Shown here: in pieces, positions 1,380 to 57,000 of the stretch
Position numbering within the stretch: position 1 is the stretch's first letter
Layout: every line of letters starts with the position of its first letter
Source of the DNA: Mizuhopecten yessoensis
Taxonomy: Eukaryota
Assembly: GCF_002113885.1 (NCBI RefSeq)
Contig: NW_018480078.1
Location: 825,375-889,374, forward strand
Reading direction: 5' to 3'
DNA length: 64,000 nucleotides
Notes under the pieces: generated by a model
Databases searched by the model: none
What the model was told of the DNA's origin: nothing
What the model saw: only the letters and a program-made list of their open reading frames with translations
Made by a program: the position numbers and the translations under genes

Positions 1380-1651
1380 TTGGCTGAGCCCAACCGCCTC
1401 GTACCCACAAACCTTCCTCATAGGAAAACAAAACACGAGTCATGTTGACGATTGTGTAACCGACGAGTTCAAAATACAGGGCACATATATAACCGGTTGT
1501 GCTCCCTCGTGCGTGGTATATTTTTCAAACGGCCATTCTGATAGTAAAGATCACTTTGAATGATAGTACAGGACAGTTGCTGACCTAAGGCGACTTCACA
1601 AAGCCCGACCAGTGATGAATCCAGACCATATTGATTAGGAATGTGTGAAAG

Positions 1652-1678
1652 CACGGGCGTAGATAATCTAATTCCGTG
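1652..1678. mobile_element. 27-bp CA...TG palindrome with perfect 7-bp TSD (GTGAAAG); putative P-element excision footprint
   Basis: gtgaaag|cacgggcgtagat-a-atctaattccgtg|gtgaaag. Confidence 0.6.
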
Positions 1679-1873
1679 GTGAAAGCTAGTGTCTAGCTGT
1701 TTATCATAAATACATATTGTTCATGGTGATTGCAAGGACTAGAACCTGGCCCCTGTGATTTTCGTCACAACGAAGGTATCATAATATACTTCTGGACCAG
1801 ACCCTAATACTCCAGTTGGGTGACAAAGGTCTGGGTGGGGTCCTTCTATAAATATAGGGGCGAGGGGTCTTAC

Positions 1874-2183
1874 CTGTAATGTTGACGTTTTGCCCGAGAG
1901 TAACCGACAGTTCGTTCATCACATTTCTGACCGAGGTGTTGTTTGGAGAATATAAAATCCCGTTTGCGTCTATATACTTGTGTTGTGTATAATCGTCCAA
2001 TTGGAAACCATCCCACCTGAAGGGTTGGGTGTGGTCGACACTGGTCACCAGGAACCGCAGCATCAGTAACAACAAGGAAAAGGCGACTGGCAACGCCACC
2101 TCGAAAACTGTAGCACAGTAATTGCGACGAGACACCGTGAAATTCTTCCATACTAACAAGAGGAATTGTCCGGCAGCCCCCAT
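1874..2183 (-). CDS. ABCA3: ABC transporter subfamily A (ABCA3-like), first coding exon; gene continues beyond the left edge
   Basis: MGAAGQFLLLVWKNFTVSRRNYCATVFEVALP... matches the ABCA N-terminal QL.LLLWKN motif, followed by TM1 and 'ILYSPNN'; phase-1 donor CAG|GTAAG at 1873; upstream acceptor near 2255. The exact paralogue is uncertain. Confidence 0.85.
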
Positions 2184-4424
2184 AGTTACGATCGCTGTAA
2201 TGGTCCACACACGATTGTACACTTGTTATTATACTAATGTATAGTAGGTCTTCCCTGAACTATATTTAGAACAGAAAAAGCTGGTATATATAAAGCACAC
2301 CCATTGGCTGCAAGAGATCGGTCATCCACACATGATCTTCAGAATCGATTTATGCAGAGTACATACTGTATATGTATTACGAAATCGATAAATTGTCTGG
2401 TGTGGTATTATCTAGTCATGACGTATAAATGTAGCGGGCATTATTGTTAGCCAAAGTCATTCCAAGGAATTATCACATTCCAATACCTCGTGAGTTCAAG
2501 GAAGCGTGACGGAGACGGGTGTCCCAGATTTGTTCACCTGTGCTGGCTGGTGCGCAGTCATGCGACTATTTGTAAAATTCCTTACGGCTGTACATATATA
2601 ACATTGTTGTATCGGCAAGCCAATTAAGGCTAGCGACGTTTGTAATTTAGCGTCAAACATAACAGCAGCTGCCGCCTACAACAGTAACGAAACTTGTGCA
2701 CGGAAAATGTTTAATGCATCGCTCGAACGTATTGATTGATTGATTGATAGGTTTTACGTCCGCTTCACTACCGAGTGGTTCGGTTATCCAGCAGACTAAG
2801 AACAGAAAGGAAAATGAGTAGAAGGGATAAAGTATGGAGTAGAGGAGGGGTGATAGGTTAGAGAAGGGGCCGTCTATCCTATATATATTAACTGTATAAG
2901 TCTAGTTTTTGTAAGACGGCTCCTATGCCTAATAATGCCTTAACCTAACACTCATTGTACAGCATCACCAAGTCAGGACCGGAAGTGAGGTACTGTGCCG
3001 CCTCCAGCCACACCAGCCCCTGCCTATTCTATGAATTTGGCTTGTATATAAAATTTGGAAGTCCATCTAATGTTTTAATAAAGAGACCCTATTTCTAACA
3101 GCCTAAACTTTTGGATAAAGTTTTCACTATTCTCTGTGTCGGCGTTTACGCGCCTACTCTTTTTCGAAAAACACAGAGGGATTTTTTTTTCCGTTCGAGA
3201 TTGGACCGTTCTCACACGGGTCACCATTTATAGTCCCGGACATCCAACGGACTGTATATTAGTGGTTAGTGTCATGCATGTGCTGTTTTTTTTGTTGTCC
3301 GTTCCATGTACTCCTCATCATTCGTCACTGAGAATAGACCTGACTATACTTGTACCAATGTATTCTTTCTTATAAACACCTCTACTTCTCTTTCACTTAT
3401 TTCTGCTCATCGTTCCGACATTTATGAATTTTAGTGAATAGTGTGATTATTAGTATGGGTAAAGATGGAAAACGGGGATGGAGGGGGGATTAGTGTTATA
3501 GTTGGGTTATAACCTGGATGGGGACTGGATAGGTTGGGGGTTGAAAGATGTGCTGGGTGTCAAAGAGATGTGCAGAAGGATTTACGGGCTTTATTAAATG
3601 CTAGTAGTATGGACCGGAGTGGTGTTGGGGATGGTTTGTGGGAGGGGGAGGGGTTGGTTGGTTGTGTGAGGATATTTAGTGGTTGTTGTGTTTACTTTTG
3701 CGTGTATTTAATCATATACACACATATATAGTATTTTATTCAATTAGACATAAGATTGCTGTGGGGTGGAAGACTCGTCCTTTTTTTTTAATACGGAACA
3801 TCCCGCACGTGGTTAGAACACAAACGTTGCAGCTTTCCTACATCAACCGGAAGTGGCTTGTTTTTATGTTTATTAATAATTATGAAATATTTTTAGTTTA
3901 GAATAATTAATTTAGTTTGTTTATTATTTTGGTTGATTGGATATTGTTGTTACTACACTATTCGCTGTGTTAGATAAACAGATATTGATTATTAGTTCAT
4001 TGTTCGTTTATCCCGTTATTCCTACCTAACTAATAGGTCCATATAGCACCATTGGCCTCCCTCCTTTACCTGCGCTAACCTTGTAGCGTACGTAGATACT
4101 ACTTTATTTAAATAGGGACGAATCCTGAGGCTATGAATATCACTAAGACAGTAACGTAAAGCCAACGTGTAGTTGTTAGATCTAAGTTCGTGCCTAAATT
4201 TAGATATTCGCTGCTTGAAATCTTTAATATGTACATATTGTATTCTTATACTTTGCGTTAATTGCGCAGTTCTGTGTTGTACAGTAGAGAGGCTAAAGCA
4301 TACAATCACTCTAAAGCAAAAGGTACTCGGACTGGCGAGGACAGTACAGTAAATTAGACTGGATCAGATCAACCATTTCCACTGTTCTTTCAGTCCTGAG
4401 TATCATGGTACTACTGTTCCTATT

Positions 4425-4775
4425 TGGATTAACGAGTTTTCACTGTTAAGTCCGGTTTAGCTAGGTTCCAGTGTTCATGTTCGGATTAACGAGTTTTCAC
4501 TGTTTTAGTCCGGTTTAGCGAGGTTCCAGTGTTCGGATTAACGAGGTTTCACTGTTTAGTCCGGTTTAGCGAGGTTCCAGTGTTCCTGTTCGGATTATCG
4601 GGGTTTCAATGTTTAGTCCGGTTTAGCGAAGTTAAACAACTTCAAAAATATAAAGTCCTGTTCTGATTAAAGAGGTTTCACTGTTTTAGGCCGGATTAGC
4701 AAGGTTCTACGGTTCCTGTTCGGATTGACAAGAATTCACTGTTTAGGTCGGTGTAGTGAGGTTCCGATGTTCCAA
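4425..4775. repeat. Tandem array of ~27-bp subunits arranged as ~55-bp dimers, resembling Tc1/pogo-type transposon termini
   Basis: Repeating cggattaacgaggtttcactgt / ccggtttagcgaggttccagtgt. Confidence 0.75.
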
Positions 4776-5919
4776 GCATTCGGTATCTTATACATACACA
4801 GAGTTTGTATATGTACATTTGCGTGTGTTTTTTGTTTTGTTTTTTGGCTATGGACTTTTAAAATGAGAAATATACATGAACTAATATTGGATCATAAAAA
4901 TATGAAATAATGTCAAGAACATCATTAACCAGTGTGCAAAAAAAAAGTACACTTAAAATAGAAGATTGATGAACATATTTATAAAGCTAAGCATTCTTTA
5001 TGCTTATTTGGTTGTTCAAGGGAAGTGAGTCTTGTGCAATAATTAAAGGAACTTCTTATAAAGTCTTTTCCCTAACACCCAACGAAAATACATTCTATCC
5101 TGTATTACACAACATTTCATAAATACACGTCACACCCTTTGTGCTAAAGATAATCAAGTGCAATGACTCACACGACCACGCCTTTCAGAATAAATGTGGT
5201 AAGTCTAGTAAAGAGACTGGCGCTTTATAGTGTCATGGCATAATTCAACGATGAAAGATGTGCGGATTTCGGCATTATATAATCTGTTTTTGTATCTATG
5301 ACAGATTATCATGTCGAGCTTAAGTGTTTGTAATTTACGTCTGTTCACATTTCTACAGTGTATCGTTAATAATAATTTTAGCAGTTTCCTAGAGAGAAGA
5401 TAGAAAACTTAACATATTAACAATGAGCTAGTACGGAAATGTGTTTTCTGATACCTCAGCAAAGTGTTAAGTTAAATATCACATCCCACAAGTACGGTCA
5501 AGTGACAACGTCTTTGTGTAAATATTTACATCGTCATTGCACTTTTATGTGTAGTTGTCAGGAATTCGAAAACAAAAATATGTCGCATTAATTCGTCATT
5601 AATTCTACATTGCGTAATATAAGGGAAGTTGTAATCAACGTAAAGTATTGACTTATCAATACTTAAGGTAAACGGTACCACTTTCGAGTGATTATTTCAA
5701 CTCCTCCAAGATCTGGCTTAGAGTTACTTCCCTTGGCTCATTCATTTTTTTGTTTCCAAATGCTACGATTTCAAACAGCTAAAATTCACTAAAACTCACA
5801 AGAAATGTTAATTTTATGAAATTACATCTTTTGAAAATTACAAATTATTCATACTAGTGCCAATATGTATTAATTTACTAATGAATCCCTAACGCTACTC
5901 ATTCTTTTATGAATTACTA

Positions 5920-6890
5920 CCACCGTTCCCTCTCTCACGAAAAGTAGCCAACTTTTCCTTCTCTCATTAATAGTATTCAACTTTCCCTCTCTCACGAAAA
6001 CAACCAACTTTTCCCTCTCTCTAATGAATAGAAACTAATCTTTCGCTCTCTCACGAATAGTTACCAACTTTTCCCTCTCACGGATAGTAACCAATTTTTC
6101 TCTCTCTAACCAACTTTTCCCTCCCACAAATAGTATCCAACTTTTCCCTCTCTCACGAAGAATAATCCATTTTTCCCTCTCTTACAAATAGTAACCAACT
6201 TTTACCTCCTCACGAATAGAAACCAACTTGTCCCTCTCTCACAAATAGGAACCAGCTTTCCCTCTCATTAATGATATCCAACTTTTCCCTCTCTCACGAA
6301 AACAACCAACTTTTCCCTCTCACAAATAGTATCCAACTTTTCCATATCTCATGATAGTAACCAACTTTTCCCTCTCTCACAAATAGTATCCAACTTTTCC
6401 ATATCTCATGATAGTAACCAACTTTTCCCTCTTTCACGAATACTAACCAACTTTTCCCTCTCTGACAAATAGTAACCCAACTTTTCCCTCTCTCACGAAT
6501 AGTAACCCAACGGTTCTCTCTCTCACGAAGAGTAACCATGTTTTGCCTCTCCCGAATTTTTCTCTTGTTTTTCCTCTCTCACGAATCGTTACCTTGTGTT
6601 CCCTTTCTCACGAATCAGTACAATGCATCCGTTGACTCTATCACGATTTGTTATCATATATTTCCGCTCTCACAAATAATATCTATCCATTTCCGGTCTC
6701 ACGAATAGTAAACATCTGTCTCACGAATCGCTTGTGTTGACTCTCTCACGAGTAGTTACTGGTTGTTTCGTCTTTCAAGAATAAAAAAAAAATAAAAAAA
6801 AACCCTGCTCTTCCCTCTCTCACGAATCGTTTCCTTCGTATCCTCTCTCGAGTAGCATTACCACCTCTACTCTCCTCACGAATACTTATC
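5920..6890. repeat. ~30-bp minisatellite (ctctctcacgaatagtaaccaacttttccc), decaying rightwards
   Basis: Many visible copies; fairly homogeneous to ~6540, then degenerate. Confidence 0.9.
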
Positions 6891-8553: not shown

Positions 8554-8581
8554 TCATCATCATCATCATCATCATCATCAT
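8554..8581. repeat. (CAT)n microsatellite
   Basis: About 9 perfect CAT units. Confidence 0.9.
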
Positions 8582-9785: not shown

Positions 9786-9990
9786 GGTGATCGGGTGGCA
9801 CAGTGCATACCGCACTCACATGTCACCCAAGACGGCCACGGTTTGACTCCCTAGTCGGACTTGGAAAGGCTTTTGGTTACCTGCTCGACCATGTGTGATT
9901 TTTCTCGGTACTCCGGTTTCCTCCAACATAAAGACCCCTTGCGCACTTCGACCCGGACCTGGACTAACGAGCCTGATTAATATAACTTGA
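9786..9990 (+). mobile_element. tRNA-derived SINE with V-type core (degenerate)
   Basis: A-box-like GGTGGCACAGTG, B-box-like GGTTTGACTCC, core TTTCTCGGTACTCCGGTTTCCTCC; same family as 58672-58918. Confidence 0.75.
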
Positions 9991-14036: not shown

Positions 14037-15207
14037 CTATGTTTCTTTTAATATGAGCTTTTCTACTTTTTCTGTGTCAATGGTGACACCAATGTCTAGC
14101 GATTGGTTAAACTGATCCATAAGCAAACCCAGGGTAGCATCCTTTCCCGATTTTACCCGCCAATGCAACAGAATTTTCATCATCTGAGTACCACTATCAT
14201 GACAATCCATATCTATGTGATCTACATCGAGTTCAGGAATTCCTAAACACGTGGTCCACTGAATCTTGTCCTTTGGAGAGACGGTGGCGGAAAAGTTCAT
14301 CAACTGTTTATCAGTCAAGCGTAGGTGGCGTTTGTGTTCCGGCACGTGTATACTTGGTGTGGCTGCTTCTGCTGCAAAAGAACGTGTTACATATTTATCA
14401 GTTTAATAATAATAAAGTAATAATATACAACATTTATATAGCGCCCTAAATAATTTGTAAAACTAGTCTAAAGCGCTTTACAGCATAAGGATAATAGTAT
14501 TAGTTATGCTTGTTAATCCCTTTGTTTTGAAATAATAAAATATCTTGAAATGAAATCTTTATCACTTTGCATATTTTAAACAATTATGAAATGCTCTTCA
14601 GGTTGAATGAATCAGGGCAAGCATATATGATAATAATAATAATAATTCGAGGTTCTTATATACCGCTTTATCACAGCCTAGTTCGTAGGTCGTCTCAAAG
14701 CGGTTCACAAATTATTATCCGTGGTTATAGGGCCTTTGCAACCAGCCAATATCTTTCTCAACTCCCTGGGGAGCATACAGCCGGCGTTGCCATTTCGGCG
14801 CTCACAGCTAGCATTCTACAATTCTAGCACTGCTCAGCAACGTCCTCATGTACAGCTGAGTAGACTGAAACAAGCGGAGTAAAGTGTCTTGCTCAAACAC
14901 ACTCACCTTTCCCTGCCTTGTCCTCTGGTGGTAGGCCACTTTCAAGTTTGTCGATAATATTTGTATAATGTCTTTCTTTCAGGAGCTCAATTAGCACTTC
15001 ATATGATCCATCTTTAGATTTCATTAGACATTCGAGACATTTTCTGTTTTTATCACGAATTCTCTTGACTTGATCGATCTCTTGTTTAGTCTCTAGAGTC
15101 AATCCTTTTCCTACTAAATGAGTTATAAAATCTGAAACGTCGAAGTTTCCAACGATATACTCCATGTGTGCTTCTATTTTAGCCACATCTTTACCATCCA
15201 TTGGCAT
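14037..15207 (-). CDS. CARD + death-domain adaptor protein (CRADD/RAIDD-like architecture), copy A, 211 aa
   Basis: Exons 15207-14907 (CARD-like: LTLETKQEID...RDKNRKCLECLMKS..GSYEVLIELL) and 14371-14037 (DD-like: CLGIPELDVDHID...QMMKILLHWR.K.GKDATLGLL); phase-1 GT-AG intron joins them in frame; non-coding exon donor at 16184. Confidence 0.85.
14628..14897 (-). mobile_element. 5'-truncated Nin/CORE-type SINE in the CARD-DD intron of copy A
   Basis: Reverse complement of the SINE at 35588-35909 (ctccctggggagcatacagcc, taaagtgtcttgctcaa, (TAA)n tail); absent from the equivalent intron of copy B. Confidence 0.85.
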
Positions 15208-16242
15208 GACTCTAAAACAGAAATATATCATTTTCAGACAACATAATGAATCGGCAGTGAATGTTAAAACGTGTGCACGTTTGTTTCGCCATTGGATATT
15301 GCGGCTTCAATCTAACCGGCCCATTTCCTTGTGGTAGAATGGTTAAATCTTACATTTTAATAGTCACATTGTCGAATGAATTATCACTTTTACACAAAAT
15401 GTTAGTACTGACTGCATGGCATATCTTATATATTTCGTTATATACTGAAGAAAACATATCAAATATATCCATATACCCTGAAGCCTGTTGTCTAAACTTT
15501 TTGACATTGAACAACTTATTGCCAAAATCTTTTTTAATTAGCTTTAGGATAGCGCGTGGCTTTTTCTTATGTTGAAATAAACCGAAAGAACCCGCTGCTT
15601 ATGAGTTTTGCAATGTACTACATATTAAGCTTACATTTTATACAGATCCGTTTCTCGTTACAACGCGATCCGTGACCGTATACGTACAAAGTGGGTCATA
15701 TCAACCATGACATAATTACATGCAAGGCAATTAAAAAATGCATATATGTTCTAGCTTGTTTGACGATCACGAGTGCGCACATCTGGTTCAGATCACTCCT
15801 TGATCCCGTAGGACTATACATAGGTTATGCTATCCATTCTTTGGTATTATCACTTTCACTTTGTTCTTCGTCCTTGCATAGTACATGTATCTACAGTGTT
15901 GATGTCCCTGTTCCTGTTCAACCAAGTACATCAACACGTAGCTACAGAGAAATTGAGCTGTGGTACAATTTAAACATGGGATAGATTGTTTGTTAATTTT
16001 GTACAAAAATGAAGTTATCGGGAATGAAAACACGGCTTCTATATAGTCTGTCTCGAACCGGGCCAATCCACAGTCTAGTGATCAGTGTTCTGATAGTTAA
16101 GCCAACATGGTGTACTTTAAAGTATATAAGTGATATTTACCATATAACCATAACGACGATTATGAAAACTATATATAAACTTACCCCAATTTTTAAAGTA
16201 AGTCCACTTGTCCAGTATACAACCCGGTAGTTTATATCTTAG

Positions 16243-16268
16243 TTCCTGCTCTTTCGAATGACATGCGC
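16243..16268 (-). promoter_or_regulatory. Conserved proximal promoter block of CARD-DD copy A
   Basis: 25/26 identical to 20995-21020; just upstream of the non-coding exon donor; contains an ETS-like CAGGAA, with TATAAA nearby. Confidence 0.5.
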
Positions 16269-16989
16269 AATGGTAACATTAGCCTTACTCAAGTCCTCAA
16301 TCACATAATATTAACGAGTAAAAGATAAAAAAAAAATCGTAACCTCTTTGCGGGCGTACGGAAAACTAACAGCTTTTTTTTATTAATACATCTGTAAAAC
16401 AACATATGGCTAAATCCATTGATGAATTAAACTTCAGGTTCAGAAAGGTCTAACAATCGATAGTGTACGTGGAATCATTCTTTGAATGGGTGACCACGAC
16501 CCACTTATTTTTTTATTTTTTTTTCAGGTTGATTGTCTATGCCCTTGAAACAGTATTTTACAACCGTGAAATGCGCAACTGAACCTATTCAAATACACAA
16601 AATGACCTGTATTAAACAACGTGTTTTATGCAGAATATCTACTTTTGATATTCGTCATCGAGAATGATTTTCATTTGCTCTCAATATCAATACAGAATGC
16701 TCCTAAATGTCTAAAGAAATGTTGGCATTATAGAGTTGTTTTGGTGATTTACATTATGAATGTCATTAATATAAATCTGACAGAGGAGTTTTCTTCAATA
16801 GGAATATGTGTTAGTTTCAAGTTATTTCCATTGAACAAGGTGGTTGATGCACAGGCATATTAACACATCATTGCCTAGCATACTGGTGAAACAGTAGGTG
16901 TTTGGTCAACAAACTTACTTTGACAACACCATCACAGAATGACTGACAACTAAAGTGTTAAGATGAATTCGAAACGAATACATTGTTTG

Positions 16990-17725
16990 ACTTATTGTGT
17001 TTGTATTTTTTTCAGAAACTTGAAACTTCTACAGCAGAAATATTTTAGGATAGAAGTGATATTAATGGCACTGCGAAGACTTATGGTATAATGAATCACA
17101 TCTTTAAATGTGATTGTCTCAAGAATACATGTTGTATAATTATAATCTATTCCCCCATGAAATTCCTTCCTTTTCAGTTTTGTCGAAACACCGCAAAAGA
17201 AATACATAGTGACAACTCCCAATTGATTCCTGATCAAACGTTGACTAACAATAAATGCTATAATTACTTGTGAGTTCTTTGACCTTATATTTGCACAGTA
17301 GCAGGGACCTTGCTATTTTCATGATTGTGTAGGCGGACATTTATTTTATTTTGAAAACATGTTTTATATTATAAACAAAAAGTGACTTATTGTGTTTGTA
17401 TCATCTACGGTAGAAATACATTGATGTCACTGCGAAGTAATGAATAATCCAATACATTTATAAATAAGATTTTCTCAAGAATATGTTTATTCAATTATGT
17501 TGAAACATTGCAAAAGAAAGGTACAATGGCTACATCAGTGACAACTCCGAATCGATTCCTGATCAAACGTTGATCAACAATAAATGCTATTATTGCTTGT
17601 GAGTTCTTTGACCTTATATATTTGCACAGTAGCAGGGATCTTGCTGTTTTAGCGGACAGTAATCATGCGTAGGTGGAAATGTATTTTTTTTAAATTGAAA
17701 ACACGTTTTATATTAAAAACAAAAA
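16990..17725. repeat. Local tandem duplication of a ~350-390 bp non-coding unit
   Basis: gacttattgtgtttgta at 16990 and 17383; shared block gattcctgatcaaacgttga...gtgagttctttgaccttatat...ttgcacagtagcaggga. Confidence 0.8.
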
Positions 17726-20140: not shown

Positions 20141-20291
20141 ACATTTGTCGACTCTGTTAATTCGAATTTCCTCTGGCCCTGACACCACGCAGACTAAGAC
20201 ATTTTGACATGTAGACGTATGTTGTCTGTCAAAATGTCTAAGTCTGGTGTCAGGGCAAGGGTAAACTCGATTTAACAGAGTCGACAAATGT
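20141..20291. mobile_element. Fold-back palindromic MITE (~150 bp) in intron 1 of copy B
   Basis: acatttgtcgactctgttaa...gccctgacacca...gacattttgaca pairs with tgtcaaaatgtc...tggtgtcagggc...ttaacagagtcgacaaatgt; a fragment of the same family lies at ~29930-29975. Confidence 0.8.
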
Positions 20292-21020: not shown

Positions 21021-21215
21021 CAGGAGTCTAACTCAAGTCCCTAGATCACACAATAATAACAAAAGTTATATTTCTAAAAACGATAGTCAGCGCAGCTAAC
21101 AACATCAGTATGTGGTAATAAATTAACTGGAAAAGATATACTATACTTTTATTTTATTTTGACATCATATTAAATAGCATATGACCTAGAAAACGGCATA
21201 ATATATGACTTATAC

Positions 21216-21245
21216 CAGAGACGTATAATGTATTATACGTCTCTG
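21216..21245. mobile_element. 30-bp perfect palindrome with perfect 7-bp TSD (CTTATAC); putative P-element footprint
   Basis: cttatac|cagagacgtataat-gt-attatacgtctctg|cttatac. Confidence 0.65.
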
Positions 21246-21259
21246 CTTATACATATACA

Positions 21260-22056: not shown

Positions 22057-25000
22057 ATGTACGGTATGATTCGGGGGATATCCCGCTTTAAATGCCAGCC
22101 TATCTGGCGGAATCTACTCGTACCTGCCACGGTGGTCAAAACGCCTTATTACTGTACAACTAACAGTAATGCAAGGGTACGTACAAAATGATTAACATTA
22201 TGTACTTAAAAATGTACTTGCTATTGTGTGAAGTGTTGTGATAGGATACATCTAGCTGTAGATCAATACACATGAAGCGGGATATTTAAAATTGTTTAAT
22301 GCTGAGAGAGTAACATTCATTGTGTCATTTCTACAGAAAATGTCACATATCAAATTTCGATCATATGAAGTTATCAATAGTTTCCAATCCTAACAGATAG
22401 ATTTTGTAAAATTTCATAAAAATAATCAATATTTGCGCTAATCGACTTAGTTCGATTAGAATACAATACATTTTACCGGTCTACCGGAATCGAGTAGGCC
22501 CATTTTGTTTTCAATTTTCCATTAGTTTCATTTTAGCAATAAGTTTCATTATTTAAATAAACGTGTTTATAGATACAATGTAGATGTATTTATTCCAGAA
22601 ATAAAATTTCCTCATTAATACATGTACGTTTGAAATTCACATTTATTCATAAAATAATAGTACATTCATTTGTAACTATGTTTAATAATTTTTTTTTAGA
22701 TATATCACTATGATACATTTTTCAGCTTTCACTGCTGCTGAAAAAATAGCCCAAATGAAAGTAATTACATTTATGTTTGACTTTGTCTTCATATTATTGT
22801 TTGCCCCTGTACATTTGCATTCTTATCATTAATTTCACCAACTTATCTTTCGTATAGAAAAAAACAAACGTTGGTTTCACGCACTTTGGCTTAGGACAAA
22901 TCGGGGAGGCCGTGGTTAGTCCACAGGGGCACGGTTCAGTAACTGGTTATTGAACCATGCCCCTGTGGTTATTCCTTAAAACCTCAAAATATTTTACTGC
23001 CCGCACTGAGAATCTAATGTATTACTTTGTATTTAATTAACTGTTTTAATATTAGTTTCAGGATAATGTAATTTTAATGGGCAGTCCTGGGTCCGGTAAA
23101 ACCACTGTTGGTCGACTGCTTGGTCCTAAATTAGGGATGGACGTGTTGGACATTGATGACCATCATCTCGAATCATTTTGGGGTATGCCTGTATCAGAAA
23201 AGGTGAGATAACATAGCTACACCTTTCTGTGTGTAACTAGTATTTTGTTATCATCATTGTTTGAAGTTACAATATAAATCTGCTTTATGATCGACGATTT
23301 GAGTGAAGACAGTTTCCATAGAAATGTATTAAAAGTATTGCAATTGGTGCGGCAATCTCTTGTCTAACCCGGTTGTCGCACACAGGGACCTTGTAATTAG
23401 TTACAGCTATATTTGGATCTAAACTAAGGTGTTCAGGTACTTTTACACGTTTTAGGGGTTTAGATCAAATGTCGGTAAAAAAAGCCACTCCAAATGATGA
23501 TATATACGGGCAATTTTACCCGGAAAGACAAAGTTGATCTAAACCCTTAAAACGTTTAAAACAACTCTGAACACCTTATAAAAGTAAAGCTGTAACAAAT
23601 GCTCATGCCCCTGTGTATAAGGAACGGCAACTCTGTGTAAAGTTTGGTTTGGTTTGGTTAAATATTGTTTAACGTCCTATCAACAGCTATGGTCATTTAA
23701 GGACGGCCTCTCCTGCGTGCAAGATGCATGTGTGTAGTGTATGCGTGTGTGTTTTGGGAGGCTGCGATATCTTCGTGTTTGCCTCCTTGTGATAGTGCGG
23801 AACTGATTCCGACTTTATAGTGCTACCTCACTGACACATACTGCCGCAGATACCCAGCAGGACACCCCACCGGAGGTACAATTCTTACGCCCTACCTGCA
23901 GGGACTCTGGGTAAAGATTCCGAGCGCAATGCATCATTTGCGATGTCTCTATGTCATCTATGTACACAGTACGTACATGTATCAAGGTTACGATCAGGTT
24001 CTTTCTTCCGTGTATAGGGAATGTGTATTGTATTGAAAACCTTGGTAAGCGAAGATTAGCACACCTAGAATTACCTAGATTCTACAGAAGACTCAACCTT
24101 TTTATTCTCAAACTGTGATGAAATAATAAACCTGCTGAATACATCAAGCAGATCGTATGAAGCGAATAGATCCGAGACTCCTTGCAGAATCAGTGTTTTT
24201 TTCTTCTGCATCTTCTGTTCCGCGAAGCCGACATTGATTACTACCTCCATCGCAACACTTCGGATCTTTATCTTTTGTGCCGCTTTAAAATGTAATTTTA
24301 TTCTAACGCCTGGTCATTGTTTGTTTGAATCTGTTAAATATGACGATATGATAACGAATGCTTGAAAACTAGTGCATTCTTTAGGCCAGCGTTGGACTGT
24401 AAGTCATGGCCCAATTATTTCCTACTGCTATTATCTAGTGACGGTAAGTCGAGTTTAAGTAGGCCGTATATTTACTTAAGGTAGTAGGGAGCGTCCAGAC
24501 ATTGTGCAAGCGCGTATGGCAAACGTGACTTAAATACTTTATCATCAGTAAAACGAGAGATAATATAGTTACCTGGTACCCAGCGTCCAAAACGAAATAT
24601 TGCTAACGTTATCGGTTCTCAAATATTGCTTTTACGATATGGGATATATATCAATTCATAAACATAAACATATATATACTCATGGATTTTGTTTACATTT
24701 TTAAAGTTGGCAGAAGTCGGATCAGATTCATTTATCGAAGAGGAAGGAAAAGCACTCATGGAGTTCAATGAACGTGGTAAAGTTATCTCCCTTACTGGTT
24801 CTAACCCCATGTACAAACCTGCGATGGACCACATAGCAAGGACGGGTACTGTGGTATTTTTGGATACACCCTCGGATGATATTGTTAGACGGTTAGAGGA
24901 AATGAGAGTCAATCGTATCGTAGGACAAAATGACGGAGTGACGATGGAAAGTATACTGAAATACAGACAACAGTTTTACGAAGGATCGTACGACATTCGT

Positions 25001-28000: not shown

Positions 28001-30343
28001 GGATATCCTAGAAAATGACGAACCCCTGATTCAGCATTTTAGGACCTGCCCCCGTATTTTCTGTAGTGATACCGCACATTCCATCGTTTTGGTTCTTATT
28101 TTTGTGTATTTTTCCTTGTTAACAAAGCGCCGCCAACTCCATCAGCTGGGGGCGTCTCCTACCACAAATAGTGTACCACGTGTCTTCGTACCTCGATCTT
28201 GTCCAGAATGATGTCATCCAACTCGGAAGCGAAGTTGATCTCTGCATACCCACAGGCAACTTCGGAAATATCTTGGCTGCGTATTATTCAAAGGTTTTTT
28301 GTGATTACTCCAGTAAATCAGTTTCACTACAAAAAAACAGCAACATTTATGTAGGCAAACGTTATACAGACCTAATTACGTTCATTCCAGTACCATAACT
28401 TAAACGCGACACACAGATCTATGTGCGGGATCGCATTGCATTAACCTCTTCAATACTAGTTCGGAACATCAATCCATAATTCGTTCTTATCAATTTGTTA
28501 TTACTTGTTCTAATAAAGCTTTTAATCGTCATGTAACAAGTGATATTTAATTCTTTGAATGATGATGAAGCTATCTTTAATTTAATAGACACTATATAAC
28601 ATTTCTACACGTAATGTTCCAAAGTCAACAGCGCTCATATTGCACAATACTACTTCTGATTTATGTGTGCCTACTGTTCGATAATTTCCTAGAACCATGC
28701 GTACCCCAACTACAGTAACCATTAGAATAGAATTTTGCCGCGCATTAATCTTACAAATGGGCAATTATTGCATTAATTATAAACTTGTGTTCACAGACTG
28801 TAATAAAATAGCATTCTTGTATTTTGTTTTTATTTACAGCAAATGGGAGTGCCGTATCGGCGATTGATTTGTGCTTCAAATTCCAACAACATTTTAACAG
28901 ATTTCATAAAAACTGGAACCTATGACCTTCGGAACCGCACATTACACAAAACGACATCACCTGCAATAGACATTCTGGTCTCGTCTAATCTAGAACGCTA
29001 TTTGTATCACCTGTCGGGCGGATCTGCCGACTTCATCTCAGAATGCTTCACAAACTTGGAGTCATCAAAACATTTTTCTATACCTGAAAAGGTTGTTAAA
29101 CGTTTGTTCTTGGTATCAATATTCTGTCACATTTCAGACTGTTTCAGTTATTTACAGGCAAGATAACTAAATCCTATTTTGTGTTGATGTATTTTTATAT
29201 GTACTTTAAGCCGAACGAAAAACGTTTCTTGTTTATTTGTAGGTTTCATATTTTGTCTATTACATCATGCCTCTTATAAATCTTAGTTGATTGATTGACC
29301 AGAATTATTCCATTGTTTTAAGAAGCTTTTTATTCAATTATGATTATATCATATTGAAGAATATAAAAAGCTTGATTTTATGTTTATGCAACATGTTGTT
29401 CGTAAATGGAATTGTCCAGTTTGAACAGCTCCGTGTGGCGAGAGGTGTGAAGATGGAAAACGTGATCTTGCATTGCTTAGTGATATAATTCAGTCTTTTT
29501 ATTTTGCATTTCTTTTCCAGATGATATCGGCCATGAAGGAACTGTTTGTTGCGGACTGGTGTTCCGAAGAGGAAGTGAAGAGGACAATCCAATCTACCCT
29601 GGATAAAACAGGTATTACGTACACTGAGCCAGGAGTGATTGAACTGGCATTATTACTACATTGAACCACGGAATTAGATTATATAAGTCCGTACATGAAC
29701 TGTAGATAATAACATAAGCCAACTATTAATTTTGATAAAACTGTTTCAGTCGAAAAGACCCTTTGTGATCAGATTAATGTTTCCTAGGCAAGTTTGGATG
29801 TTCTGTAGTGGGGTCACTGTATTCTCTTTAAAAATCATATAGCGTGCATTACTTACCTTACAATTATTGTTTAACCCTCTTTTCTACTTACCGTACCTAC
29901 TGGCCCGACACCATTCTGGTAACATCTATCTGTCAAAATGTCCAAGTCTGGTGTCAGGGCCAGGGGAAAATCAGGCTACCGAACCTACTTGAATGTCGTT
30001 TGTTGTTCCATAATCTTATTCCACAGGCTACCTTTTGGATCCCCATACCGCTGTCGCAAAATCTGTCGGTGACCGCTTCAACGTCAAAGACTGTCCTATG
30101 ATCATTGCGTCCACAGCACATTACTCGAAATTTGCACCCGATGTGGCCAGATTCCTTGGTCTGGATATTGAAAACGAACAGCTGAACGAAGTGTTTGATA
30201 AACTTAAAGACATGTGCGCTAGTCCTGTTATGCACATTCCTCTCCAGCAATCGATTGAATGTCCACAAATCCACACAAAAGTCCTGAATTCCACGTATTC
30301 CGAAGTTCGGGAGGAAATCAAAACTTTCGCTCGTACGCTGTAG
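22057..30343 (+). CDS. THNSL1: Threonine synthase-like 1 (shikimate-kinase-like P-loop domain fused to a PLP threonine-synthase domain), 720 aa
   Basis: Exons 22057-22176, 23062-23202, 24707-25503, 26094-26164, 26576-26680, 27003-27105, 28128-28293, 28840-29091, 29521-29611, 30027-30343 join in frame (2163 nt). Motifs GSPGSGKT, GLAPDGGL, ELFHGPTASFKD, VATSGDTG, PTGNFGN, DPHTA. Exon 1 is Arg-rich and acid-free like a mitochondrial presequence (least certain exon). AATAAA at 31169. Confidence 0.93.
22922..22967. mobile_element. 46-bp palindrome with 7-bp TSD (GTTAGTC/GTTATTC); putative P-element footprint
   Basis: 22-bp arms, 20/22 complementary, 2-bp loop. Confidence 0.6.
23425..23578. mobile_element. 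Palindromic MITE, apparently nested in an older inverted-repeat element (23381-23615)
   Basis: taaggtgttcag...acgttttaggggtttagatcaa pairs with ttgatctaaacccttaaaacgt...ctgaacacctta; outer cacaggg...gttacagct / agctgtaac...cccctgtg. Confidence 0.7.
23641..23872 (-). mobile_element. SINE 3' portion with (AAACC)n tail
   Basis: ggtttggtttgg...tttaacgtcc...ggtcatttaaggacgg...ctttatagtgctacctcactg, a pattern typical of mollusc SINE 3' regions. Confidence 0.6.
29667..29693. mobile_element. Degenerate 27-bp palindrome of the CACGGAATTAGAT family
   Basis: attgaac|cacggaattagat-t-atataagtccgta|catgaac; left arm is the exact reverse complement of the right arm at 1666-1678. Confidence 0.45.
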
Positions 30344-47048: not shown

Positions 47049-47112
47049 TGACAACACTTTGTTGATTTGCTGTTTGTTAACTTCATAAGATTTTGTGTTT
47101 CTGAAAATGCAG

Positions 47113-47234
47113 TGTAGAGAAATTAATTAAACTAGACTGTGTCAATCGTCAGCGACCAGGGTAGCTCAATTTGTAGAGCATCCGTCTTGGGTTTGAACCT
47201 CTGTATGGCCGTGCATTTGTCCTCTTCTACAACA
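47113..47234 (+). mobile_element. Solo terminal repeat of the tRNA-related TRIM family
   Basis: TGTAG...ACA ends; gaccagggtagctcaatttgtagagc; homologous to the repeats at 48484-49022. Confidence 0.55.
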
Positions 47235-47414
47235 GTAGCAGTAGGATAACCTAGTTTTGATGAGTGCATAATATAGATTTCTAGAACAAATAAAATCAAA
47301 CAAAAAATAACAAGCGAAGTTAATTTTCTTGAGGCCTGTTCGTTTATCTGTTGATGTGGATCAACCGATTTCTCTTTTTTTTTTAAATGTGATATTCCAG
47401 TCAGCTGGTAAAAC

Positions 47415-47445
47415 CACGGAATTCTATAGCTAATTTAATTCCGTG
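47415..47445. mobile_element. 31-bp CACGGAATT...AATTCCGTG palindrome with near-7-bp TSD; putative P-element footprint
   Basis: gtaaaac|cacggaatt-ctatagctaattt-aattccgtg|gtaaaca. Confidence 0.55.
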
Positions 47446-47637
47446 GTAAACAAAATTAAAACCACCTAATACTAGTACAACAGATAAACGTAATAGGCTA
47501 TGGCTGGATTTTTGGTAAAACCTAACGAGTGACGGACCTGCAAATAACAATGCTAATGTAGGTCTCTGGCGTCTCGTCAGATAACAACATCAAATCACCA
47601 GGTCCATCCCTATTTCATAAAAGAACAGCCTTGTCAC

Positions 47638-47861: not shown

Positions 47862-48017
47862 GTAAGACTTCAAAACTAGTATAAACTACCGGCCACCACA
47901 TGTACAGTTCTACTTTTGTATATCATTCTTAAACATACAACGTGAATTGTTGGGTATTTTATGACTAATTCGTCCATATTGTTTTTGTGTAGGGCCTATA
48001 CCTTTTTTTAGTATGCT

Positions 48018-48042
48018 CAGGGATGTGTACTTCACATCCCTG
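48018..48042. mobile_element. 25-bp palindrome with perfect 7-bp TSD (GTATGCT); putative P-element footprint
   Basis: gtatgct|cagggatgtg-tactt-cacatccctg|gtatgct. Confidence 0.65.
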
Positions 48043-48322
48043 GTATGCTTCATGCTTTTTTTCCTGATAAAAGGTTAAGAGACTTGAAAAAGTGGTAATA
48101 CATGTATCCTGTATATAGATTCAGTAAGATAATTAAAGCTTTTAAAAGTGGTCATGCATGATTGACATGATAAGAGATTTGATATATATATAAAATGACA
48201 TTTTTTCTTTATTCAAAAACAAGTCCCATCATATAGTTTTACTTTTGTATGATGATCGAGATGTGTACTTTATATTTCAGCTTTATACAAGGTATAACTT
48301 CGATAAATCTGAGCCAATTACA

Positions 48323-51838: not shown

Positions 51839-52665
51839 AACAAGAGGCCCATGGGCCTTAACGGTCACCTGAGTCTATAGTATTTATTTGTGTTGTTGAA
51901 ATATGTACCAATTTGAGTAAAAAATAGTATAATGTTAACTTAACTTTGTCAGGACCATGAGCTGATCATTCCTAGACCAATTTTAAGTGAGATCGGCCTA
52001 TTAGAACTTAGTAGCAAAATAGCGGCCATGGCAGCCAAATTGTATTTCTGATTGACCCGAAAAATAAAAACACTTTGTCAGGACCATGATTCGATCATTC
52101 CTACAATGTTTCAGTTCAATCGGCCAAGTAGATCTTTACTTTTAGTTTGAAATAGTTTTCCAAAATGGCAGGCGTGGTGGCCATATTGGATTTCTGATCG
52201 ACCCGAAAAATAAAAACACTTTGTCAGGACCATGATTCGATCATTCCTACAAAGTTTCAGTTCAATCGGCCTAGCAGAACTTGACTTTAAGTTTGTAATA
52301 GGTTTTCAAAATGGCGGCCGTGGCGGGCATATTGGATTTCTGATCGACCCGAAAAATAAAAACACTTTGTCAGGACCATGATTCGATCATTCCTACAATG
52401 TTTCAGTTCAATAGGCCAAGTAGATCTTTACTTTCAGTTTGAAATAGTTTTCCAAAATGGCAGGCGTGGGGGCCATATTGGATTTCTGATCTACCCGAAA
52501 AATAACAACACTTCGTCAGGACCATGAGTCAATCATTCCTACAAAGTTTTAGTTCAATCGGCCTAGCAGAACTTGACTTTAAGTTTGAATTGTAAAATGT
52601 TAACGGACGACGGACGAAAACGGATAGCAATAGGTCACTTGAGCTAAAGCTCAGGTGACCTAAAA
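51839..52665. mobile_element. Intact HINE with 146-bp internal tandem repeats
   Basis: aacaagaggcccatgggcc start; gacccgaaaaataa-type anchors at 52054, 52200, 52346, 52492; GACG microsatellite; aggtcacttgagc...gctcaggtgacct hairpin end. Confidence 0.9.
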
Positions 52666-54035
52666 ATGTAATATAATAATGAGAGGAGTAGAGTACCTTG
52701 GCCTGATTTTGGTCATTTTGAACTGTACAGCAGTGACCTACTTTTTACAATGTGGGTTACATATACATATATTATATTATCCAGTAGAATGCATATAGCT
52801 GTAATCACTCTAAATATTTTGAAATTTGTTAAAGAACCAGATTTTCTATAATCATTCAAATAAATTACCATATTGTGCTCTTTTCAACTTCCCCCTCTCA
52901 TTTTTCTATGCAAGGACTTCATAATTACCTATTTAACTACTAGACTAAGCAAAAAAAACAAGCATATCTGTTATTGCCGACTTAAGCATTGAAGTGGGAA
53001 GTCTTCTTTATTTTATATCCAAATAAAACAATTTTAATATTGCTTCACTTATACAGTATATAGAAATAAAATTATTTTTTTGGTAAACTTGATTAAAGAA
53101 ACAAAAAATGACATACAACTTTTCCAATGTTAAAACAATTGTTGTTTTATTTCATTCATAGCACAATCATGTACTTTTATTCTGATCTGTTACACATACT
53201 TTCATTCAAATATTTCCTATCATAGCACATTTCACACTTTGTTCATGTATCATAAGTCACACTCTGCCATACTATATACATTATCTGTCATACTACTTCG
53301 AACATGAAGGGAAAGTCTCTCTTTGTCATGCCAGAGGTTATTGTGTGTGGAGATTTGGCTGGTTACATTCTTCAGTTTCCTTTGTGCATAATAGTTCAGA
53401 ATAATTGACTAATTTCCTCTGTGCATAATAGTTAAGAATAACTGACTATCTTCTTTTACAAAATTTCTATTTCTGCCTCATTGATACATGTAACATTTTA
53501 AAAGGAGATACTAAAAGGATCCCAAAGAGAACTAGCACACCTTATTATCCACTAATCAACATTTCTAACAGATTCACAAAATTAGTGAATGCAGTCAAGA
53601 TATTTCGGTCATTTTCTGTGATTTTCCATTACTCCATCAGATGCAGATAGTGTCACTTTGATTAAGATTTATGTGTTAAAGTTTTCTTCCATACTGTAAG
53701 TCTGATCTCTAACAATGACTTTCAGAAGGCTATCTTCTCTCTTAACCATCATGTGAGTTTCACTAGCACATGAGTACCATACTGCTTACTCTAGCTTTGT
53801 GTAAAAGCAGCACTGAACAGGAATCCTGTTTAATCATCATGTTTCTACATCTATTCATTTCTTGCATTATTCAATGCAGATCAAGAAATATTCACTTGAC
53901 GCTTAACTTGGATCAATATGATCTAAGGTTTTGTTGAATGAACACGTGAACAACTGATGGTGATTTCTGCAATGCTATCTGCCACACAGATTTTCCAAGT
54001 TTTATTTCCACCCTCGAATATAGAACCTGTGATCA

Positions 54036-57000
54036 TCACCACATGAAAGGGGCTCTTTCCCGTAACATGCGGACGTTGAACTGACGCCACTCGTGCTGTT
54101 TGATCCAGAGTTCCTGTGTGGTGTCCAGACAGGCTAGTACAGACGCTCCCTTCCAACAGGTGAGGGTTGGGTCCATGTCCTACAGCAGAGACAGATTTGT
54201 AGCAAAAGCCTGATACTTTAAGATGATGATTCAAATTCAATCATATGATTTATTTACTGTTTGTCATGTAAGAATGTCAATGATGTCCACATGCCGGGTA
54301 TATTTAAGGAATAATGATATAAAGTTATATTCAGAGACAACCTTTAAAAGTACATACAGTGGTGTATTATTACAGGTAGCCTATCCATACAGCTTCAATT
54401 AACACAAAAAAAGTTCAATAGGGATTTTATAAAGGTGGTCTAGATTTTTAATACAGGTAATCTCTTATTAGAGACAGTCTTTTGAGCAGGTCTGACTAAT
54501 GACCTTTTGTTGTGCTAATATGTCAATATTTATGGTACATTATTATGATCACTTGTGTGACTATAAAAGGACAATGATGGGTCTATATATAGCTTGGAGA
54601 TGATTACATTTTTATGGTACATTTTGTATAATATAATTCTTGTGAGGACATTCAAAGTATTATATATAGCTGAAATAAGATGGATTAACTCTGGTGTGTG
54701 GCTGAAATCCCTTAAAATGTAAACCTGATTTTAAATATACTTGTCATGCAAGGACATTTTCGTTCTTTATATATAGGTAGATTAAGATTGAGTTTGGTGG
54801 TATGATATATTTACCTTCTGTCGTGTGAGTACGTCCATGGTTTCTAGCATAAGTCTGTACTGGGGAGGCATGCCTACCCAGACCCGGTACTGCAGCCACT
54901 GCTGGGCCTCCTCAAACATCATCCCACCTCCCACCACAATGATACAGCTATACATCTTCTTCTTCACCTCGTCACTCCCTGTGTAATGAAAAAGTAGAGA
55001 AACTGAGCAAGATCACAAAATTATAACACCCCCCATGCACATCCATGTATGTTGTACTTTCACTGTGTCAGGTTACAGAAATATCCAACCAACTGTTTAG
55101 GAGAAGTTGTGCCTACAAGCACGACATGGTGATTTCTACTTACCTACCACGCCCAACTCAAAGTTTGGGGGTGTAGTAAACATACAGACAAAACTTAGTT
55201 CCAAAGGGACTTAAACATTAAACCATTAATTCATGAAAATCTTTGTTAATGCAAAGACATATATATTACAAATCTCTGTTATTATAAATCTCTGTAATAT
55301 ATATGTCTCTGGTTAATGTTATGAATTGATTAGTACTGTTTCGCAGACATTAGTTTTCCATATATTGGCCCCTATTGTTAACTTGATATACCACAGTACA
55401 TTCCTATAGTCTTGTTTATGTTAACAGAAGGTAACTTTCTATTTATACTGATGATGATAATAATTCTTTGTATAATGGACAGAAAATGAAATTTTTTGAT
55501 ATTTATGCAAAATAACGGAAAGTTTGGTTTTTGGTGAATATTGATTCTTATTACAATCTTATTAAAACACAGATGTCTAAATGACCTTTTGACATTCTGA
55601 TGAGGCTTAGGATCATGAAAACTTTCAACTGAAGTGATAATTTGAGGTAAATGTACAATTTTTGAGTCCCATATCAAAATGTTATGATATTAATATGTAC
55701 TTACAGTAGAGTAATACATATTATTACTGTGGAGGGTTCACCCAATTTACTCTAGTTTCCAATAGAATACAGACTGCATTGATATTATTGACATTAAATT
55801 TGAGTCTTTTACTATTTCATGACCCTATATCGATACGCTTTTCATAAATTCACAAAGGAAGGGAAACAACTCTCGTCAAACCTACATAGATAACTTTGAG
55901 CACCAGACAGTGATTGCATTTGGTCACAGGTCATTGCCCATAACTCATAAAACAAATAATTAATTCCAAACTTGTCCTCACCACATCTGTCTATACTCTG
56001 AAGAATGGCCTGGTCGACCCCCATCAGTTGTAACACTGGCTCAGATTCCATTTCCTGCTCCTCCTCGATGTCCAGTCGCCGTGTCCCCTTGTTGCCGTCT
56101 CCACCTGTCACTTGGAGATTGTCGGGAGCATCGTTGGAGTCCTCGTCCATCTGTTGCTGGACCTGTGTGTCGTCCAGCTGTCCTAGGTTGGCCTCAGAGT
56201 TGTCTCGGCTCATCTCTGTGTTGTCTTTTTTCTTTGCTAATTTTGCCTGATTTTTAAACATTTTATATAATTTAATAATGACAATAATTGTCAAAGAATA
56301 AAAATAGACAGCATTTATACCATATAACGAAACCTTAACATTATAATGAATGAAGAAACTTTGTAAATTATAAATATAAAGTACAAACATATCTTGCTGC
56401 GAAATTGTCATAATGAAAAAGATACACATGTGTATAATATTTTTCTGGATTTGGTGACGTTTTGACATGTAAAATAAAATATAGCTTTTTTTTCATAAAG
56501 TTAATATATTCCGGAAAAGAAAAGAAAACCTCAATAAGGTATATGACAGTCTTGAAGACAAAATTATTGTTAATTATCTAGAAACATATAATCTTCAAAA
56601 TGATGGAAACAAACTATTTTAAGAAAATATTGTTAATACAGCTGCTTCTATTTAAAACTTTGAAATTATTCGGAACATTTTCTAAACGGAATCAATAAAT
56701 ATAAGTTACCTCCCTGGAAGTGGTCTGGCGGAGAAAGAACTCGTCATGAGGGTCCGCCGGGTCACCATCGGAGCGACTCTGGACATGTATGAGATCAGAC
56801 CCTTGTAGACCGAGCATGTCTGGGAAAAACAAACTCATGGGAGCCAGAATTGTCTCATCACCAAACTTCATAGCATATTTAATAATGTTTTGTTCTGGTT
56901 TCCGTATAAGTATTGATCTGTCCTTCACTCCAAAGTTGTCCTGTAAAAAAAAAATTGATACAAGGGAAAGTGACTAATCTCTATCCCCAAAATCTTTAAG

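Follow-up and report, generated by a model that had tools for sequence, protein, structure and literature searches.

Seven palindromes between 7-bp repeats

Seven very small palindromes of the form CA...TG, each lying between 7-bp direct repeats, are present in a 64,000-nt stretch of Mizuhopecten yessoensis DNA (the window), which raises the question of what process could have left them there. An earlier sequence-only reading had attributed them to the excision of P-superfamily transposons and had sorted their ends into at least four terminus families; all seven were found where it had placed them, and its grouping was correct. The sites, numbered 1 to 7 in order of coordinate, are as follows, with their target site duplications (TSDs):

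Site 1: 1652-1678 (27 bp; 1645..1685 with TSDs), minus strand, family-1 scar, two perfect copies of the TSD GTGAAAG
Site 2: 21216-21245 (30 bp; 21209..21252 with TSDs), unstranded, family-2b scar, perfect TSD CTTATAC
Site 3: 22922-22967 (46 bp; 22915..22974 with TSDs), unstranded, family-3 remnant, TSD GTTAGTC/GTTATTC
Site 4: 29667-29693 (27 bp; 29660..29700 with flanks), plus strand, family-1 scar, TSD decayed
Site 5: 47415-47445 (31 bp; 47408..47452 with TSDs), unstranded, diverged family-1-like scar, TSD GTAAAAC/GTAAACA
Site 6: 48018-48042 (25 bp; 48011..48049 with TSDs), unstranded, family-4 scar, perfect TSD GTATGCT
Site 7: 55252-55311 (60 bp; 55245..55318 with TSDs), unstranded, family-2c remnant, perfect TSD GTTAATG

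Sites 1, 4 and 5 share CACGGAATT.. ends (family 1, F1), with CACGGAATT-type sequence in both arms of site 5; sites 2 and 7 have CAGAGAC(G/A)TATA ends (F2), and sites 3 (F3) and 6 (F4) are the only members of their families in the window. Site 1 has its left end on the minus strand and belongs to a common 27-bp class, with substitutions in its right arm. The structure at site 4 ends in CCGTA, its right arm ending ..AAGTCCGTA, and its flanks, ATTGAAC/CATGAAC, agree at 5/7 positions; the same right-arm variant (AAGTCCGTA) recurs in loci L007/L026, where the TSD is perfect. The 30-bp junction of site 2 is found in the same form at at least 4 further loci, alongside a 34-bp form with 17+17 nt, and site 6 is a recurrent 25-bp class of CAGGGATGTGTAGTGGA termini with one substitution.

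We scanned the window with a strict pattern, which required CA..TG, two arms of 9 nt or longer and no more than 1 mismatch in the TSD, using 100 dinucleotide shuffles as a control. With a TSD length of 7 there were 4 matches, against a shuffle mean of 0.05; the same scan gave no match at TSD lengths of 5, 8, 9 and 10, and only weak matches with 9-nt arms at 4 and 6. Matches with a TSD of 5 within the fetched loci were dismissed as AT-rich chance matches, and other short inverted repeats of the window (20190-20246, 47110-47139, 60887-60941, 14662-14704 and 52631-52662) were rejected as scars for want of 7-bp TSDs.

Abundance, arm lengths and junctions

We also compared the abundance of the four termini across the 988-Mb genome with that of reversed patterns, and each was far more frequent than its control, including the F1 terminal 13-mer (3029 copies vs 17). 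Pairs of ends no more than 30 nt apart numbered 1388 for F1, 575 for F2 and 169 for F4, compared to 0 for each control, and 27 of 30 sampled F1 loci were 19-36-bp structures of a left and a right end with 7-bp TSDs. Both in the window and genome-wide, the structures therefore pass the comparison with background which had been proposed for them. The four families together account for approximately 3,800 sites, from which about 0.25 sites would be expected per 64 kb; 5 were observed in the window, which is a hotspot at about 20 times the genome average. The large genome-wide record that had been anticipated thus exists, but the figure of one per 9 kb describes this hotspot and cannot be extrapolated to the genome. 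Some scars were also nested within others, and a separate 7-bp TSD accompanied each.

Arms, junctions and TSDs of F1 were described from 39 unique scars with flanks, whilst the TSDs of F2 and F4 scars were examined at a few loci. The 7-bp TSD of F1 was perfect in 20/39 scars and had at most 1 mismatch in 29/39, and the target consensus was G-T-W-W-R-A-C, confirming the GT...AC bias noted from the window. A TSD of 7-8 bp with a palindromic target motif, as found here, is characteristic of the P superfamily, a member of which, Galileo, has the 7-bp target GTANTAC (PMC4168063).

The length of element end kept in the scars is sharply limited. The left arm of F1 was 13-17 nt long in 37/39 scars and 19 nt in 2/39, and the right arm was at most 17 nt in 38/39 and 18 nt in 1/39. 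The arms of F4 end at 17 nt, though the long elements run on with GGGAT.., and extended beyond 17 nt in only 2 of about 45 scars. For F2 the limits were 18 nt (left) and 19 nt (right) in F2a, 17+17 in F2b and 19+19 in F2c, so that the limit is 17, 18 or 19 nt depending on the family. Beyond it, pairs become scarce: 42 F1 left-right pairs had a gap of 31-60 nt, compared to the 1388 at 0-30 nt, and nearly all of the 42 were double, tandem or nested scars.

A limit of about 17 nt on both sides is that of P-type footprints, and the predicted limit held at 17 nt for F1 and F4 and at 17-19 nt for F2, but not for sites 3 and 7. Site 3 consists of two 22-nt arms plus TG; its terminus is that of a small MITE family of roughly 180 bp (41 ends, paired ends 114-202 bp apart), in which it is the sole copy shorter than 100 bp. 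In site 7 a left arm of 19 nt and a right arm of 26 nt are separated by some 15 nt of filler, which repeats AATCTCTG from the right arm. With one arm or both longer than 19 nt, neither site is a simple overhang-to-overhang join, and the two are best read as abortive gap-repair products, in which excision would have been followed by slight template-directed synthesis and joining.

The junctions between the arms are diverse. Among 100 F1 junctions listed there were dozens of distinct sequences, the 27-bp class accounting for 30 of them (and for 11/39 of the scars with flanks); junctions outside this class carry filler, which in one case includes a piece of an F2 terminus. An overlap of 1-3 nt was found in 21/39 F1 scars and a filler of 1-12 nt in 15/39, whilst a 22-bp class made up 13/50 of the F4 junctions. 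Microhomology, filler, templated inserts and many variants, the signatures of end joining, were found in F1, F2 and F4. TTA microhomology would explain the 27-bp class of F1, and the recurrent classes are exactly those that the longest microhomology between the termini (TTA in F1, TA in F4) would predict, a correspondence which fits end joining without proving it.

Transposase genes beside the termini

We searched for longer elements with the same termini and found them, with P-type transposase genes adjoining the ends of F1 and F2. The profile PF21787 had 25 matches genome-wide. At locus L074, a 766-aa open frame (2811-5108, minus strand) with PF21787, PF21788 and PF21789 lies downstream of an F2a left end, from which it is separated by a run of 870 N. 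At locus L064, a gene fragment 94% identical to the L074 gene is contiguous with an F2a right end. The two copies diverge near the L074 3' end, and neither fuzzy matching nor an inverted-repeat search found a right end for the L074 copy; the left and right ends of F2a are linked via these two 94% identical copies and their co-occurrence in scars only. For F1, frames on contig C2226 (locus L073) match PF21787 and PF21788, and an F1 left end precedes them by 2.8 kb in the same orientation, with the 3' part of the transposase copy hidden in a stretch (14907-17400) which is all N. In the genes beside the F1 and F2 ends, a GTP-binding insertion domain interrupts the RNase H-like catalytic domain. 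We estimate the chance co-location of 31 long F1 ends with 25 transposase matches in 988 Mb at about 0.002.

No THAP match was obtained in five frames lying upstream in the C2226 copy, and the N-terminus of the L074 gene falls in the run of N. A complete autonomous copy, with both terminal inverted repeats (TIRs), TSD and transposase gene, was not recovered, as runs of N interrupt both candidates. A 4.2-kb F1 element at locus L031 was rejected as autonomous because it has no long ORF and contains a nested retroelement-like piece. No transposase partner was found for F3 or F4; at L086 two F4 ends lie 6.3 kb apart, and the sequence between them shows no ORF of at least 100 aa, no TSD and no similarity to P transposase, so that no autonomous partner of F4 was found. 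A genome search with the profile PF12017 gave no match, and since control genomes were likewise without a match this result is uninformative.

Origin and meaning of the structures

We conclude that these structures are very probably sites at which a P-superfamily element was inserted by cut-and-paste, with duplication of a 7-bp target, and from which it was subsequently excised, as the arm limit, the diversity of junctions and the transposase genes beside F1 and F2 termini indicate. On excision, the transposase would sever the transferred strand precisely where the element ends, and the other strand at a point 17-19 nt within it; with such a staggered cut, each donor flank would carry, beside its copy of the TSD, a 3' tail made of the terminal 17-19 nt of the element. 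Alternative, microhomology-using end joining may then trim, anneal or fill both tails, giving a product in which the two TSD copies enclose a left and a right end of at most 17-19 nt each, joined with 1-3 nt of overlap or with 0-12 nt of filler between them. As movement of this kind would be non-replicative, with one scar per donor site, scars should outnumber surviving elements, and the ratio observed was roughly 3:1 for F4 and 30-100:1 for F2a and F1. We infer excision rather than observe it, because no locus was seen as both full element and scar.

The palindromes could also be mobile micro-MITEs, minimal two-end elements cut and pasted by the transposase from a few master copies. The few junction classes which occur at many sites with differing TSDs (27-bp F1, 22-bp F4) are what such an amplifying micro-element would also give, and identical complex junctions were found in the 60-bp F2c form (at least 8 loci) and the F2a form with TAAC filler (at least 14 loci). 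Against this, all 7 fetched 60-bp copies share flanking sequence, as do both fetched TAAC copies, so that these are duplicated loci inside a larger amplified repeat; the locus pairs L004/L005, L007/L026 and L084/L085 are likewise duplicated, each pair bearing the same scar. Identical junctions within families had been named as a test of the scar reading, and what was found instead was high variability, with dozens of junction variants per family and not the homogeneous interior at many unrelated insertion sites which is typical of MITEs. The longer variants hold parental bases at positions 14-19 and are not derivable from the short forms, the recurrent classes match the longest terminal microhomologies, and an element of 22-27 bp, being shorter than twice the inferred stagger, could presumably not be freed by the same cleavage. 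We therefore consider mobile micro-elements very unlikely.

It is likewise very unlikely that the structures are internal deletions, arising within inserted elements through random deletion or replication slippage, with breakpoints not set by transposase cleavage. Non-autonomous P elements do arise through internal deletion, one or both arms of sites 3 and 7 are longer than 19 nt and rare scars run a few bases beyond the limit; however, nearly every copy has both breakpoints no further than 17-19 nt from the ends, and products of 54-83 bp are about 30 times rarer and mostly double scars, where random deletion would give a broad length continuum. A non-P cut-and-paste superfamily with 7-bp TSDs and long staggered cuts is also a very unlikely source. 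It draws on the lack of a recovered autonomous copy with both TIRs, the lack of a transposase link for F3 and F4 and the lack of THAP in the frames tested, but F1 and F2 ends lie beside genes with the P-specific GTP-binding insertion domain, a co-location which chance, as estimated for F1, would scarcely produce, and the 7-bp GTnnnAC target agrees with Galileo. We know of no superfamily other than P in which some 17 nt from either end stay behind at the donor site.

Excision by a P-type transposase also agrees with known systems. Experimental junctions of Drosophila P excision consist of TSD, at most 17 nt, microhomology or insert, at most 17 nt, and TSD (PMC2895639), and the 17-nt stagger of the Drosophila P element has been described (PMC7776569). 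Like the scars reported here, Drosophila melanogaster footprints keep both TSD copies and no more than some 17 nt of either inverted end, with short microhomology, AT-rich filler and templated inserts, and the Drosophila transposase has the GTP-binding insertion domain. In contrast, the TSD is 7 bp here and 8 bp there, the termini are unrelated in sequence, the limit here varies from 17 to 19 nt by family, and thousands of naturally fixed scars compare with the products of a laboratory cross. The Galileo / 1360 branch (PMC4168063) shares the 7-bp TSD, a palindromic GTAnTAC-type target and a P-type transposase, but Galileo has very long, foldback-like TIRs whereas the elements here have short ones; the Galileo paper reports no scars and the word "footprint" is absent from its text. 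P-derived MITEs, such as the Anopheles gambiae P-MITEs (PMC1562414), are similarly short and non-coding with P ends and P-type TSDs; MITEs, however, are uniform in sequence, measure about 100 bp or more and transpose, whereas the structures here are 19-48 bp long, have heterogeneous junctions and are apparently immobile end products. No report of genome-wide P-type scars was found in the literature searched, coverage of which was incomplete.

The chances appear evenly balanced that these scars can be read as a quantitative fossil record of P-type transposition in a mollusc, with pure cut-and-paste families, landing-site hotspots and a family-specific cut at 17-19 nt. If so, the excess of scars would point to pure cut-and-paste movement, with donors healed by end joining and not by sister-chromatid copying; the kilobase-scale hotspots shared by scars of unrelated P families would map preferred P landing sites; and the family-specific cut would imply that the long stagger is ancient, has been conserved in the superfamily and can be slightly tuned. 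No feature of P transposition is odder than the 17-nt staggered cut, which to our knowledge has been shown biochemically for the Drosophila enzyme only. Thousands of natural scars with a 17-19-nt limit, from several families in a distant animal, are independent, sequence-only evidence for its conservation across the superfamily. The scars record past excisions which repeat maskers ignore, permitting estimates of excision vs retention, of insertion hotspots and of how repair pathways (microhomology, filler, templated inserts) are used in the germline of a non-model organism. It should also be noted that palindromes of 20-50 bp with 7-bp repeats risk mis-annotation as hairpin elements or regulatory palindromes.

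Seven palindromes and the families of their ends

The seven CA-starting palindromes with 7-bp flanking repeats which the sequence-only reading had proposed were all present (7/7). Each starts with CA, ends with TG (TA in one) and consists almost wholly of two inverted arms between 7-bp flanking copies, and by their termini they fall into families F1 to F4:

1652-1678: site 1, F1
21216-21245: site 2, F2 (subfamily F2b)
22922-22967: site 3, F3
29667-29693: site 4, F1
47415-47445: site 5, F1
48018-48042: site 6, F4
55252-55311: site 7, F2 (subfamily F2c)

A strict scan of the window (CA..TG; arms ≥ 9 nt with ≤ 1 mismatch; target-site duplication (TSD) with ≤ 1 mismatch) recovered 4 structures at a TSD of 7, a frequency above the shuffled background (mean 0.05; 100 dinucleotide-preserving shuffles). 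The same scan gave zero structures at TSDs of 5, 8, 9 and 10 and weak AT-rich matches alone at 4 and 6. The remaining three sites, with diverged arms or TSDs, were picked up by the family-terminus search. Two 28-bp imperfect CA..TG palindromes 292 bp apart (52161-52188 and 52453-52480) have identical flanks and were rejected as a local direct repeat. Solitary terminus-like matches with no partner end nearby, all on the minus strand, lie at 4192 (F1 right-type), 20850 (F2-type), 23615 (F3-type) and 47568 (F2-type), and may stem from truncated elements or be what is left of one side only. Two coding frames were also seen, the first 1.7-3.5 kb downstream of sites 2 and 3:

24689-25507, + strand: open frame with shikimate-kinase and threonine-synthase-N domains, resembling a THNSL1-type gene exon
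58423-58845, - strand: short actin-like frame, near 58.4-58.8 kb

We searched the termini across the assembly (988 Mb, 82,659 contigs, ~36% G+C). The F1 13-mer CACGGAATTAGAT has 3029 genomic copies, against 17 for the reversed control, and 27 of 30 sampled loci were a left end plus a right end (..TAAGTCCGTG) of 19-36 bp together, flanked by 7-bp repeats. Exact left-13/right-10 pairs 0-30 nt apart number 1388 genome-wide (control 0). Tiny sites were likewise found for F2 (CAGAGACGTATA; 575, control 0), subfamily F2c (39) and F4 (CAGGGATGTG; 169, control 0). F3 (CACAGGGGCA) has just 5 tiny sites, and its 17-mer marks 41 ends, several in plus/minus pairs 114-202 bp apart; F3 is therefore a small MITE family.

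TSD length is exactly 7 bp; among 39 F1 scars, the two copies agree fully in 20 and differ by at most one base in 29. The suspected GT...AC target bias was borne out by these 39 scars, whose consensus is the palindromic G-T-W-W-R-A-C. Galileo, a P-superfamily element of Drosophila, also has 7-bp TSDs, and their consensus GTANTAC (PMC4168063) resembles the GTWWRAC of F1.

Junction diversity and the limit on arm length

The 100 listed F1 junctions (of 1388) comprise dozens of distinct sequences. The 27-bp form, 30 of the 100, fits left bases 1-15 and the last 15 right bases overlapping at TTA; no microhomology close to the F1 tips is longer. In the remaining junctions the overlap is 0-2 nt or filler is present, and one filler includes part of an F2 terminus. 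When 39 unique F1 scars with flanks were compared to long-element ends, the left arm measured 13-17 nt in 37 scars and 19 nt in the other 2; the long element runs on for kilobases past this point. The right arm did not exceed 17 nt in 38 scars and reached 18 nt in the remaining one. Overlaps of 1-3 nt were found in 21 and filler of 1-12 nt in 15. In F4, long elements read GGGAT.. past base 17, and just 2 of ~45 scars reaching base 17 extend beyond it; the repeated classes are 22 bp (TA overlap), 25, 30 and 33 bp, and a 40-bp form has 17 nt from each end with 6 nt of filler between. The limits are 17+17 in F2b (a 34-bp palindrome), left 18 and right 19 in F2a, where the 37-bp form is the most frequent independent class, and 19+19 in F2c (38 bp). 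Arm lengths mostly at or below ~17 nt had been anticipated, and the cut-off was found at 17 nt in F1 and F4 and at 17-19 nt in the F2 subfamilies. Filler between the listed F2a arms is often (TA)n, n = 0-3, which might reflect slippage of the polymerase or synthesis from a template while the ends were joined.

An alternative origin is random internal deletion of longer elements. Only 42 F1 left..right pairs are spaced 31-60 nt apart, against 1388 at 0-30 nt, and nearly all 42 are adjacent scars, tandem scar-plus-flank arrays or a scar within a scar (with its own 7-bp repeat), so breakpoints at both ends together fall within the terminal 17-19 nt. Cleavage-defined ends predict such a pattern and random deletion does not. 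The palindromes might instead be mobile micro-MITEs, for which the sequence-only reading had taken identical junctions genome-wide as the mark, and two complex junctions do recur: a TAAC-filler F2a junction at at least 14 loci, and at 8 loci the following compound:

60-bp F2c compound that combines a single left end with two right ends: fetched loci L077-L083, e.g. contig position G000:C42:209609-209668; at least 8 copies of a larger repeat, flanks shared

However, flanks are common to all fetched copies (7 of the F2c compound, 2 of the TAAC F2a form), so each is one scar inside a larger repeat which was later amplified, and among these copies no junction with filler turned up in unrelated flanking sequence. 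The simple repeated classes, which do have unrelated flanks and differing TSDs, are those that microhomology predicts. The recurring complex junctions checked in this way are thus duplicated loci, and the excision-scar reading stands.

P-type transposases and the excision reading

At least 25 genomic matches to the P/THAP9-type RNase H N-terminal domain were found. Locus L074 (contig C5526) carries a 766-aa open frame with PF21787, PF21788 (the GTP-binding insertion domain) and PF21789, with an F2a left end upstream on the same strand; because an 870-N run intervenes, this link rests on the scaffold. At L064 (C3819) a gene fragment 94% identical to the L074 gene is contiguous with an F2a right end 196 bp on, and since the two ends co-occur in F2a scars, both belong to one element family. 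Just 31 F1 left ends genome-wide continue as a long element. One (C2226:8506) is on the same strand as, and 2.8 kb upstream of, open frames with PF21787 and PF21788 that have 52-70% protein identity to the L074 gene, and the interval contains no N; by our estimate, chance would give ~0.002 co-locations of this kind. The 3' part of this transposase region is an N run. A THAP domain was not found in five frames upstream in the C2226 copy, and the L074 N-terminus falls in an N run. The proposal that longer elements share these termini and encode a P-type transposase is supported for F1 and F2, whose termini lie beside such genes; no transposase partner was found for F3 and F4. A second, distant P-type clade (L065-L071; ~25% protein identity to the L074 clade) includes some genes with long open frames (718-774 aa).

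Experimental P-excision junctions in Drosophila have the same anatomy as our palindromes: TSD, ≤ 17 nt, microhomology or insert, ≤ 17 nt, TSD (PMC2895639), and P ends are cleaved 17 nt inside the element (PMC7776569). Given this match, the transposase genes beside F1 and F2 termini and arms that stop at 17-19 nt, the palindromes are best read, as proposed, as P-superfamily excision scars. We conclude that P-type elements inserted and were then excised with a 17-19-nt stagger: an element would insert at its target site, its removal would leave staggered tails on the donor, and these would be united by end joining. Both the point of cleavage and the repair pathway are inferred. Two window sites exceed the limit: site 3 has 22-nt arms, and site 7 has a left arm of 19 nt, a right arm of 26 nt and filler which is a partial copy of the right arm. 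Over-length products in Drosophila come from slight templated repair synthesis before joining (PMC2895639), and with less confidence we would attribute both sites to a little of the same.

Abundance and clustering of scars

P-element footprints from Drosophila crosses are textbook knowledge. A literature search of incomplete coverage returned neither an account of any genome with thousands of fixed P-type scars nor a stagger inferred outside flies. Scars outnumber long elements: ~1% of F1 left ends and 2-3 of 100 listed F2a ends continue as a long element, and F4 has roughly 3 scars per long element. The four families combined give ~3,800 sites in 988 Mb, or ~0.25 expected per 64 kb, against 5 sites of the counted kinds in the window, so the extrapolation of one per 9 kb genome-wide fails.

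Scars of differing families cluster: an F1 scar lies no more than 2 kb from 7 of the 39 F2 scars listed, where a conservative permutation within contigs predicts 0.36 (P < 0.0002). Within the window, 1.7 kb separates sites 2 and 3, and 0.6 kb separates sites 5 and 6. At G000:C2573:389066-389126, C210:1209067-1209140 and C5243:280093-280159, other scars lie nested in F1 scars, and every nested scar has a 7-bp duplication of its own; two come from another family, whose ends read CAGGGAC(A)GTATA... This nesting suggests repeated insertion and excision at one spot. Tandem arrays whose unit is an F1 scar plus flank (G000:C4496:388077-389587 and C4918:143377-143825; periods roughly 105-130 bp and 64 bp) are scars that became part of a satellite-like array. 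At L048:1913-1993, a near-perfect palindrome of 81 bp, CAATCGCAAC...GTTGCGATTG, has a perfect 10-bp direct repeat, AGGACAAGAC, on both sides and is a small element of a different kind.
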